Source of the DNA: Octopus bimaculoides
Taxonomy: Eukaryota
Assembly (NCBI RefSeq): GCF_001194135.2
Contig: NC_068985.1
Span: 16,783,902-16,847,901, forward strand
Direction of reading: 5' to 3'
Length of the DNA stretch: 64,000 nt
The notes below the pieces were generated by a model, which had not been told where the DNA came from, did not search any database, and worked only from the letters and a program-made list of their open reading frames with translations. Shown in pieces: positions 34,779-41,919 of this stretch. The position numbers and the translations under genes are program-made. How positions within the stretch are numbered: position 1 is the first letter of the stretch; every line of letters starts with the position of its first letter.

Positions 34779-35917
34779 GTATCCTTTAATGTAAACATTG
34801 CTGGTTTTAAGGATATTCTTTTTACTTATACATGTTTTAATTTAGCTAGTGTTTTTTAAACTTTATTTTCCATTTGTTATTAAATATGCAATTTTTGTCC
34901 CTCTATATGATATCTAGAATTTCAGAAAAGCAGTATTGTACAAGTTACATTGTCTTTATTGGAGCAACTAAAATGTTCATTTTATGATTTGTCAAATCCA
35001 TGATTGAAATAATGGAAAGAAACTCTGATCTGTAAATTAATTTCAGTGTCTAAATATTTTCATTACTACATACCATTGTTATTCAGCACCGATGTAATTT
35101 CTTCATTCATTATTATCAAGAATTAATATTTTCTTAAAATTTCGTTTTAGAAAGTCCTTTACTAATTTGGACAATATTCTAGTGTGTGCATGTGCACGCG
35201 TCTTTCTTTCTTTGTATTTTTTATGATTCAGGCAAGTGAAAGGGGCAGTTCCTATGGCAATCAGAGACTGGCAACATTTATACAATTTATGTTCAGTTTG
35301 TACATCTGTAATTCTAGGACTGCAGAAGAGCATGGGGAGAAAGGGAATTCCAGAGTCTAAGAAGGAAGGATTGGGTATTGTGACAGACTTTCTAAAACGA
35401 AATTTATTGGGAATTGTGACTGATGTGAGATGAAGAAAGAGAGAGAGAGAGAGAGAGATATCGTACGGGTTGTAAAAAGAGATTAGTGGGCATGGGTTGA
35501 GTTTTGTGGACAGCTAGCTAGTGCAGAAGCCCTTATTGGGATAACATGTTATAGTGGAGTGTATTGATGAGTTAATCAGACAGATGGCCCTCTTTTGGAT
35601 ACTTTGTAGGATGTGTGTGGTAGCAGCAACACCTTTGCAGATGGTGGGAGCAGTATTTTACTGTTAGTCTTAAACTTTATTAAGAGAAAGAGTTAGCTGT
35701 TCAAGTATTTCCTGATCTGGGATGCAGTCTTTTGATAAGCTATGTATACGAGATCACCAATAAAGATCATCAGAGATTGTGAAGGATTAGCACTCGTAAC
35801 AACTGTTTAATTGCATGATTAGAGATTAGAAATGGTGAGGTACAAGATATTATTCCATGCACTGGTCATATCTTCATGCTATTTAAGAGACAATTATCAT
35901 TGGGGAATTCTGTTTAA

Positions 35918-36090
35918 CCTTTTAGCTTTCAGATTACTCTGTCAAATGAAATTTTATTCACCTTGTTTTGAATTAATAATGTGATTGTCTTCTTTTTAAA
36001 TGACATTGTAGGGTATGTGCAGGAGGTTGGACCTGGCCTTTTTGAACATAAAAACACAATATTTGGGCCAGTATAGCCAGTTTAAATGCT
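35918..36090. mobile_element. TTAA-flanked MITE fragment of a second family
   Basis: Left end TTAA|CCTTTTAGC and an inverted GTTTAAATGCT near 36080-36090; the right terminus is truncated. Confidence 0.45.
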
Positions 36091-39300: not shown

Positions 39301-41919
39301 TACTTCACCATATTCTCTCTAAATATAAATTAACTTGATATGAAATTAATTCAAAGGGCAATTTATTGAAGAAAATATTTCTGTGGCACACTGATATGAT
39401 ATTTCACGTGTTCACTGAACAATAATCTAGAAATTATTTCTTTTCATTGTAAATTCTAGGAATTGCTTTTTAAAATCTTTTTCATCTTTTTCATCTTTTT
39501 CTAATACTATTTTGAAAGAATTACATTTTGGTTAAATTTTAAATAAAGTGCGGATGTGATCCATGTCTTTTAATAACCAGAAATAAGATTGTCTGATCTT
39601 ACTCTAATGAATAGAAAATTATATTTTCCACTTTTGTTAGTGGATTAATATATTTCATATTTGGTCTAAGTTAATGTTAGAAGGTATTCTTGTATAAATC
39701 AGGTTTGATAACTGACTGAGGTTTTATCAGTGTAACTTTGTAGTTGGGTGGAGATTGTTAACGGGGGAACATTTTAAAATCTTTCGTTGCATGTAGAGAT
39801 TGCTTTAGAAAGATAAAGCCACTTTACAGTTCCTCTTTTTTTTGTAAATTCTAAGCTGTTTAAATTGAAATTTGAAAAATTGCATATTGCTCATCACCAT
39901 CATCATTTAATGTCCATTTCCATGTTGGCATGGGTTGGAACATTTTCACAGGAGCTGGTAAACCATAGGACTGTGTCAATCTCCACTTTATAGAGTGTAC
40001 TGGGTGCTTTTTATGTGGCACCATCACCAGTGCCTATTTTAGCATATAAAATTTGTGAGGTTCAACACCTTGAATTCAGCTTTCAACACTCTTGTCCATA
40101 TTTTTTCCATGCTCTTCCTCTTCCACAGTTTTCTTTCATTTGGGATCTTCTGTACTCGTATATTATTATCCAAATGTAAGTGTAAAAAACAATTTTTTTT
40201 TATCTCTAAAGACAAGCTTAATATTCATCGTCAACATCATTATTTAGCATCCAAATTCCTGAGTGTAGTGGCTGCTTTTTCATGTCTCCAACACTAGTGA
40301 TGTTGCCAAGTAGCTCGTGAAGCAAGACCATTTGATTGAGAGAGAGGGAAGTGGCTTTATACCAAGTATTGAGGGCCAAGTGTATGATAGAGAGATAGGG
40401 ACAAGTGTCCTGCCATAGAGGAGATACATGGCTACCCCACTTAAAAAAAAAAAGAGAGATGATGATAGTGGTAATCTGCCAGGGTGTACCTTCAGGATAC
40501 AAGAGGGTTAATGTGAGTGGGGGATAGAGACAGGGGAATAGGTAGGTATATAATTTCATTAAATCATTTCAAATATTTAAACATTTAATCTAAAATATTA
40601 TTTACAACAAATCTATGAATAGAGTTTGCCCAGATAATCATCCTTTTGATTAATTCGAATTAAATTATGTACTTGTATTAAATTATTTTGTCTAGAAACC
40701 ATCTTATTAGAAGGAATAGAATAAACTACTGTAATCTTTGAAAAAGAGTATAAATGCAACAAAGATTGGGGAATGATAGCAGCAACACTAGCTCAGATCA
40801 GAATATTTCTCATAAGAAAATGGATTCCTGTGTCTCTAAGCTTGAATATTTTCTCTTGTTTTCTCAACTGGTAGCCTGTTTAACCACCCTCCAGTATTAA
40901 TAAGCGATTTGTGCCATTTAATAGCTTTGTACAACACATGCAATGTTCCTTTATATACAAATAGCATCCACTAAAACTGCTTTTGTAATAGGACAGTTGA
41001 ATAAAAATACTGGCATTTGAAAAGTTAAGGTCATAAAAGTCTGTTTTGCTTGGGTCTGGGGTGGGGAATTGAATAGTTTAACATTTTAAATATTTTATTT
41101 TAGTGTGATTTTAGCTTATTGAGTATTTAACTATATTTACTAGTATTATTACAAGCATTTAAGGCAGTGAGTCGGCAGAGTCATTGCTGCTCCAGACAAA
41201 ATGTTTAGTGTCATTTCTCCTGACTTTACATTCCGAGTTCAAATACTGCTGAGGTCGACTTTGCCTTTCATCCTTTCAAGGTCTATAAAATAAGTACTGG
41301 GGTTGATGATATTGACTTACTGCAGGCCTTGTGCCAGAATTTGAAATCTTTATTAAAAACATTTGTATCACCAAAGACTTGGTTTTAGGATTAAATAATG
41401 CTGTATTTCTTGTAATAATGTATTCTCTTCCAGGTCTTTAGCTGTTTTTAAGCGTCAAAGGTTAAAAAATTGAATTTTTCTATTTATGTCAGAATACGAA
41501 GAGGTTGGGAGCTGTGTCAACAATCTGAACCAGCCTATTGATTGTAGTACTTTTGTGTTTTCCAGCTTGAGTTAATACCGCTAACCATTTATTGCATTTG
41601 TTCAAAATTCTTTTGCAAAAAAAATATAAAGACAATATAATTCAATATTAAATGCTTGTGCAAGAAGCAAATATTTTTATCAGAAGTTAGCATTTCTTGA
41701 TATGTTTAAACATGTTTAAGTGACCCCCATTAAAATTATATAATCTTTACATTGCCTTCAAGGAATGCATCGTAAATTAATCCTTTCTTGTTTCAACTGA
41801 CCTTTTGTTGTTGATAGTTATTTTAATCTGCTGTTTTGTATCAATTTACTTACTTTTTATTTTTAGATTTAAATATTGTTGACCTATTTTTCCGACTATA
41901 AATTTCTTAACTCTGCCAG

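Follow-up and report, generated by a model that had tools for sequence, protein, structure and literature searches.

Which spliceosome removes the first coding intron of the octopus ARF6 gene, and how old is that arrangement? The gene lies in a stretch of 64,000 nucleotides (nt) of Octopus bimaculoides DNA (NCBI RefSeq assembly GCF_001194135.2, contig NC_068985.1, positions 16,783,902 to 16,847,901 of the forward strand; hereafter the window), and its coding sequence is interrupted there by three introns. From sequence comparison we are highly confident that the first of them, intron 1, is a GT-AG U12-type (minor-spliceosome) intron inherited from the common ancestor of animals and fungi. This assignment is favored because the signals sit at the exact exon borders, because their scores separate intron 1 from the other two introns, and because they are conserved across lineages at the identical codon and phase.

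Splice signals of ARF6 intron 1

A tblastn search of the window with human ARF6 as the query recovered four collinear coding segments on the + strand, of which the exon 1 and exon 2 segments are 90-97% identical to the human protein. Joined as in Table 1, they form an open reading frame (ORF) of 528 nt encoding a 175-amino acid (aa) ARF6, which an exact-sequence look-up found to be identical to RefSeq XP_014769225.1 (Octopus bimaculoides) and XP_029637032.1 (O. sinensis). The product has the features of ARF6, a class III ADP-ribosylation factor, namely an MGK N-terminus, the P-loop GLDAAGKT, a length of 175 aa and the ARF6 name in RefSeq, and it shows 95% identity to vertebrate ARF6 (P0016) and ~59-71% to matches named ARF1 or ARF3. 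The ARF6 locus of chromosome CM046605.1 in GCA_001194135.2 (L002) corresponds to positions 32697-51402 of the window without a single differing base.

Exon 1 ends at 34778 with ...GGA AAA ACA A, and intron 1 splits codon 28 (Thr28) in phase 1, just past the P-loop (residues 20-27). The initial annotation had described here a 7.1-kb intron directly past the P-loop, with a U12-type donor and branch point, a branch A ~9-10 nt from the intron end and no extended polypyrimidine tract, beside two further coding introns with ordinary U2 signals. Every one of these sequence claims proved correct. The intron measures 7141 nt, has matched GT...AG termini and opens with GTATCCTTT; its branch site, TTCTTAAC, agrees with the consensus TCCTTAAC at 7/8 positions, with one C-to-T mismatch, and offers A's at -10 and -11. 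U12 branch sites typically lie 10-15 nt from the 3' splice site. Immediately 5' of the octopus branch site stands ACTATAAA, the branch site is followed by CTCTGCC alone before the terminal AG is reached, and the closest pyrimidine run, CTATTTTTCC, is located ~27-36 nt upstream of the 3' end; in the sequence read, no polypyrimidine tract adjoins the 3' splice site. Introns 2 and 3 have U2 donors and pyrimidine tracts, and thus normal U2 signals.

Scoring against U12 weight matrices, which the initial annotation had proposed, sets intron 1 apart: with approximate U12 and U2 matrices, the log-odds are +14.7 bits at the 5' splice site, the branch site scoring +10.3 bits. The corresponding 5' splice site values are -16.2 bits for intron 2 and -11.7 bits for intron 3, and both of these introns score below 2 at the branch site. 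The same separation of intron 1 from introns 2 and 3 repeats in all species examined except Trichoplax.

Taken alone, the motif words occur at chance frequency in 64 kb and are uninformative: bare-word counts in the window gave 2 copies of GTATCCTTT against 0.75 expected, and 3 of TTCTTAAC against 4.5. It is their placement rather than their number that is weighty, because both motifs fall exactly on exon borders that were set independently by ARF6 protein homology. The octamer GTATCCTT is found at 2/6766 GT sites of the window (~3e-4), and a branch score equal to or better than that of intron 1, with the A at -8 to -25, at 13/7174 pseudo-acceptors (0.18%, ~2e-3); the product of the two fractions, if these are taken as independent, is a joint chance of ~5e-7 per GT-AG pair. 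The second exact GTATCCTTT, at 43724-43732 (+) inside intron 2, is most likely a chance occurrence; it was rejected as a donor, as there are stops in all three upstream frames and no exon-like context.

The Thr28 site in other genomes

The ARF6 loci of other genomes were compared by exact spliced alignment in 10 named lineages, all of them opisthokonts, with no bivalve or coral included. All three octopus intron positions are common to the annelid, cnidarian, placozoan and fungal genes, and the sea cucumber shares them bar a duplication artefact at its exon 4 acceptor. The phase-1 site in Thr28 presents itself as follows: 1) in O. sinensis the donor is GTATCCTTT and the branch site TTTCTTAAC, with the A at -10. 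2) Two siboglinid tubeworm loci have GTATCCTTA with TTCCTTGAC (L003) and GTATCCTTG with TTCCTTGAT (L004), each with the A at -12. 3) The sea cucumber Apostichopus japonicus, the cnidarian Exaiptasia diaphana and the glomeromycete fungus Gigaspora (two assemblies) all have GTATCCTTT, followed by TTCCTTAAT (A at -22), GACCTTGAT (A at -12) and ATCCTTAAT (A at -23), respectively. 4) In two species of the placozoan Trichoplax (donor GTAAAAAT) and in the Drosophila obscura group (GTAAGG or GTAAGC, 70-74 nt) the intron is of U2 type. 5) The Tasmanian devil and Callorhinchus have no intron at the site, their ARF6 coding sequence (CDS) being a single exon. The initial annotation had suggested aligning ARF6 genes for a Thr28 phase-1 intron with RTATCCT, and such an intron is indeed present in annelids, a cnidarian, a sea cucumber and a fungus. 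More specifically, GTATCCTT and a TCCTTRAY-like branch site occur together at this site in O. sinensis, the two siboglinids, Apostichopus, Exaiptasia, the two Gigaspora assemblies and at least 4 environmental contigs. Persistence of U12 signals in orthologous introns is the comparative yardstick applied by U12DB and in the intronIC training sets. U12-like signals were never seen in ARF6 introns 2 and 3 of any species examined. Between the two Octopus species intron 1 is ~90% identical throughout, with the donor and branch site unchanged; outside this pair nothing shared between the compared intron ends stands out except the motifs, which points to selection on the motifs themselves.

A scan of metagenome contigs with the pattern GGNAARACN-A/GTATCCTT returned at least 120 matches, mostly bacterial GKT-SIL coding sequence, and at least 9 of them represent ARF6 exon 1 followed by the GTATCCTT donor. 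At least 4 environmental ARF6 contigs span the whole intron, with TTTCTTAAC, ATCTTAAC, GCCTTAAC or TCCTTAAC as the branch site and the branch A 12-14 nt from the 3' splice site; the octopus variant TTTCTTAAC thus recurs in an environmental ARF6 that is unrelated (L065). There are no ARF1-type sequences among the metagenome matches listed, which is weak evidence. One environmental contig (L091) carries a last ARF6 exon at 881-1030 and, ~6.5 kb downstream, a first ARF6 exon with a U12 donor at 7594-7683, an arrangement that suggests tandem ARF6 genes in an animal.

Transcripts from two other phyla document removal of the orthologous intron. In Apostichopus, comparison of transcript contigs L006 and L007 with the genomic contig L005 shows it to be precisely excised (junction 1582^3221), as do transcript contigs L015 and L018 of Gigaspora against genomic L013 (junction 1094^1257). 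The octopus junction 34778^41920 agrees with the RefSeq models of two Octopus species, and the GenBank model of O. vulgaris (P0068) reads GKT-T-ILYK over the same junction despite a wrong N-terminus.

Some minor features of these loci may be mentioned here. In the Apostichopus locus the acceptor region of exon 4 is tandemly duplicated over a short stretch (L005, ~5424-5515); an apparent 79-nt AT-AC intron at this acceptor was dismissed as an artefact of the duplication, the transcripts using the second copy. In Gigaspora the transcripts skip ~108 nt past the stop codon (L013, 2373-2482), which indicates an intron in the 3' untranslated region (UTR) of its ARF6. In Trichoplax intron 1 ends in ...TTATCCTTTCCTTAATAG (L009/L010; H2) or ...CCTTTCGTTAATAG (T. 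adhaerens), with a TCCTTAAT-like word just ~5 nt from the 3' splice site, which may be what is left of the ancestral U12 branch site or may have arisen by coincidence.

Spliceosome assignment and alternative explanations

U12-type introns are characterized by rigid 5' splice site and branch motifs, by the absence of a pyrimidine tract and by a short branch-to-3' distance, for which 11-13 nt is optimal (PMC3584512); intronIC, a classifier of such introns, searches for the branch point from -55 to -5 (PMC7367187). Minor introns are further described as biased towards phase 1 and a 5'-proximal position (PMC10639083, PMC2426677), and the phase and location of intron 1 fit both biases, which supports the U12 call. 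Several points weigh against it: the scoring matrices are our own approximations of published logos and not those of intronIC; the octopus branch site is off consensus at one position; its A at -10 falls slightly below the 11-13 nt optimum (PMC3584512); the preservation of the signals between O. bimaculoides and O. sinensis is uninformative, given the ~90% identity of the whole intron; and the evidence for the octopus junction itself consists of RefSeq and GenBank gene models.

It is very improbable, in our estimate, that intron 1 is an ordinary U2-type intron which came by its U12-like ends through chance and is spliced by the major spliceosome. Such an explanation could draw on the chance frequency of the GTATCCTTT and TTCTTAAC words, on the second GTATCCTTT in non-coding sequence at 43724 and on the U2 introns that Drosophila and Trichoplax carry at the same site, but the donor context CAA/GTATCC has none of the -1 G, +4 A, +5 G and +6 T required for pairing with U1 and is a poor U1 target. 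It would also have to account for a 3' splice site with no adjoining pyrimidine tract, for two motifs placed exactly at the exon borders (with the joint chance calculated above, independence assumed), and for the recurrence of the same 8-mer donor and branch motif at this site, and never in introns 2 and 3, in more than 10 unrelated sequences. The gene model might instead be wrong at the junction, through use of another donor or acceptor, the joining of exons from different transcripts or a misassembly, a reading in favor of which the visibly wrong N-terminus of the GenBank O. vulgaris model could be cited. We regard this as extremely improbable for the octopus junction, which yields an unbroken protein 95% identical to vertebrate ARF6, is the same in the RefSeq models of two Octopus species and in the faulty O. 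vulgaris model, spans an intron without an assembly gap and is identical to the junction backed by transcripts in two other phyla.

There remains the notion of a transitional U12-like intron (hybrid or "minor-like"), which the major spliceosome would splice in part or under certain conditions, or whose splicing would be inefficient, with frequent retention or the use of cryptic 3' sites. The donor, the chief determinant of spliceosome choice, is perfect at 9/9 positions, the TTTCTTAAC variant recurs in another ARF6 (L065) and the signals are unaltered in O. sinensis; against these, the C-to-T change in the branch site, the A at -10 below the 11-13 nt optimum, the conversion of the same site in at least two lineages and the 7.1-kb length of the intron could be cited in its favor, and we consider it highly unlikely.

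If intron 1 is a U12-type intron, as we hold, its removal would proceed along the known minor pathway, in which the U11/U12 di-snRNP (small nuclear ribonucleoprotein) binds the two motifs and U11 gives way to U6atac at the 5' splice site (PMC3584512). The octopus intron would accordingly be a substrate of the minor spliceosome: the di-snRNP would recognize GTATCCTTT (by U11, later U6atac) and TTCTTAAC (by U12) jointly, the branch site pairing with one G-U wobble, since its C-to-T change would place a U opposite a G of the U12 small nuclear RNA, and with the branch A 10-11 nt from the CAG. U4atac/U6atac.U5 would next catalyze excision of intron 1, and the major spliceosome would remove introns 2 and 3. 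U12 splicing can be slow and rate-limiting according to Patel et al. 2002, as cited in PMC3584512, and intron 1 may likewise have a kinetic effect on ARF6 expression.

No paper in the literature searched names ARF6 as a minor-intron gene. We take human ARF6 to be intronless and the fly intron to be of U2 type, and ARF6 is missing from the classic catalogues (human, mouse, fly, Ciona, Arabidopsis) because those species are without the intron or carry it in U2 form. Known U12 introns of comparable age number in the hundreds, and intron 1 is a textbook, ordinary member of a well-known intron class, its phase, 5' position and deep conservation being typical. With the GT-AG U12-type class, reportedly defined by Burge et al. 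in 1998, it has in common the /GTATCCTTT donor, a TCCTTAAC-like branch site near the 3' splice site, the missing pyrimidine tract, GT-AG termini, a non-0 phase, a 5'-proximal position, its status as the lone U12 intron among U2 introns, and deep conservation of position and type; it differs in one C-to-T change in the branch site and a distance of 10 at the short end of the range, neither of them categorical. The class has been reviewed (PMC3584512), and Larue & Roy applied intronIC to 3107 annotated genomes, including that of Octopus sinensis, with the full table at introns.info (PMC10639083), where the ARF6 intron is very probably already listed. The same survey places O. sinensis with the species whose minor introns have been catalogued, and describes molluscs as comparatively rich in such introns (PMC10639083).

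History of the site and other features of the window

The U12 state at the Thr28 site is common to a glomeromycete fungus, a cnidarian, a deuterostome and two lophotrochozoan phyla, and its presence in the fungus dates it at least to the animal-fungal ancestor. As introns are held to convert from the minor to the major type (PMC10639083), this distribution argues for a U12-type intron at the site in the opisthokont ancestor, which would be the simplest history, with the direction of change obtained by parsimony from the 10 named lineages. The U12 type would then have been kept in cephalopods, annelids, echinoderms, cnidarians and glomeromycete fungi, converted independently to U2 in the lines leading to Drosophila and Trichoplax, and deleted, jointly with introns 2 and 3, before the lines of cartilaginous fish and mammals separated, as far as the jawed-vertebrate ARF6 genes examined indicate. 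The suggestion in the initial annotation that the intron is an ancient feature lost in vertebrates is supported by the single-exon CDS of a marsupial and a chimaera and by the U12 intron of the fungus, which makes the intron older than had been proposed. Either reverse-transcriptase-mediated loss or the substitution of a retrocopy for the earlier gene would fit the joint disappearance of all three introns from vertebrate ARF6. The loss from ARF6 is mildly notable, since losses of U12 introns are otherwise very few in vertebrates (PMC3584512).

Two groups of documented cases bear comparison. About 20 U12 introns are given as common to human and Arabidopsis (PMC2426677, PMC3584512), and like these kingdom-spanning introns the ARF6 intron appears to have kept its position, phase and type in the 5' part of the gene for more than 1 billion years, here in animals and a glomeromycete fungus; unlike them, it is missing from vertebrates, the best keepers of U12 introns (PMC3584512). 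Minor-to-major conversion and intron deletion are on record from earlier work (Lin et al. 2010, PMC2831892; Larue & Roy 2023, PMC10639083), and the ARF6 genes of Drosophila and Trichoplax, with a U2 intron at the site, and of vertebrates, with all coding introns lost together, are similar; they differ in that the direction of change in ARF6 is obtained by parsimony and that either a retrocopy or stepwise loss may account for the vertebrate state.

The ARF6 intron thus adds a clean, deeply conserved case to the known ancient minor introns, in which a single site displays retention, conversion to U2 and deletion, and it would bring a central membrane-traffic GTPase into the set of minor-intron genes of most non-vertebrate animals. 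Where minor splicing is impaired or altered in such animals, ARF6 would be expected to be affected, and the Thr28 site could serve as a convenient marker intron for whether a genome retains minor splicing. The general view is unchanged, as pan-eukaryotic surveys already infer many ancestral minor introns. One could speculate, though we think it unlikely, that the P-loop intron remained U12-type for more than 1 billion years because slow minor splicing sets the dosage or timing of ARF6, and that vertebrates escaped this control through an intronless, retrocopy-like ARF6; if so, the state of the Thr28 intron (U12, U2 or absent) would mark lineage-specific regulatory rewiring of ARF6 and not neutral drift.

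Table 1. Features of the ARF6 gene in the window (positions counted from its first letter)
Feature	Position	Strand	Basis
Probable acceptor (ttccag, 34669-34674) and 5' UTR portion of the first coding exon	34669-34696	+	inferred
Coding exon 1, ATG to base 1 of codon 28 (A of Thr28)	34697-34778	+	tblastn and exact spliced alignment to XP_014769225.1
Intron 1, 7141 nt, phase 1, GT-AG, U12-type signals	34779-41919	+	sequence, spliced alignment, scoring
Candidate U12-type 5' splice site GTATCCTTT	34779-34787	+	9/9 match to the RTATCCTT(T) consensus
Candidate U12-type branch-point sequence TTTCTTAAC	41903-41911	+	A's at 41909 (-11) and 41910 (-10), counted from the final intron base
Intron 1 3' splice site CAG, no adjoining polypyrimidine tract	41917-41919	+	sequence
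Coding exon 2, 104 nt	41920-42023	+	tblastn, spliced alignment
Intron 2, U2 type, GTAAGT...TCTCTTCAG, CAG end, phase 0	42024-47274	+	sequence, spliced alignment, scoring
Coding exon 3, 199 nt	47275-47473	+	tblastn, junction reading
Intron 3, U2 type, GTATGT...TTTCTTACAG, phase 1	47474-49259	+	sequence, scoring
Coding exon 4, with TGA stop	49260-49402	+	tblastn, junction reading

At the 5' end of the gene an in-frame TGA immediately precedes the ARF6 ATG, and the upstream exon of the O. vulgaris model P0068 continues into the equivalent of 34669-34696. This GenBank "ARF6" model, of 282 aa and with a gene range of 171 kb, is chimeric: the 5' UTR/ATG region is translated out of frame (ELVHRRPWG), and a spurious 62-nt GT-AG intron (equivalent to 34705-34766, within exon 1) is needed to rejoin the frame at GKTT. 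The myristoylated N-terminus of ARF6 is thereby stripped (the affected part corresponds to 34677-34778 of the window), and the U12 junction is nonetheless used. U12 junctions trip gene predictors, and this model is chimeric at exactly exon 1.

A nested gene as the reason for the length of intron 1 was considered and dropped, there being no meaningful ORF inside it and no RNA gene in the window by Rfam. Intron 1 holds no ORF of at least 120 aa from ATG, GTG or TTG and no Rfam match, and its longest stop-to-stop frames, 136 aa at 35106-35513 (-) and 116 aa at 40221-40568 (-), are both of low complexity. None of its 7141 nt falls in a run of N. The window as a whole has six such runs totaling 2220 nt (355-505, 21492-21844, 27394-27403, 44358-44516, 51405-52175 and 61920-62695), of which none lies in intron 1 and one, of 159 nt (44358-44516), in intron 2. 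Among six-frame ORFs of at least 75 aa no clear protein-coding exons were found in the window outside ARF6. Intron 2 also holds a fragment of a LINE (long interspersed nuclear element): by eye, frames resembling the C-terminal part of a LINE reverse transcriptase (e.g. ...RLHWYGHVVRMDEDSCMKK...GRPRKTW) were recognized at 33111-33584 (-), slightly upstream of ARF6, and at 44627-44959 (-), within intron 2. A related short repeat (QLDALPNANHS...VVGAFTC), likewise noticed by eye, is present at ~44198 and ~57186.

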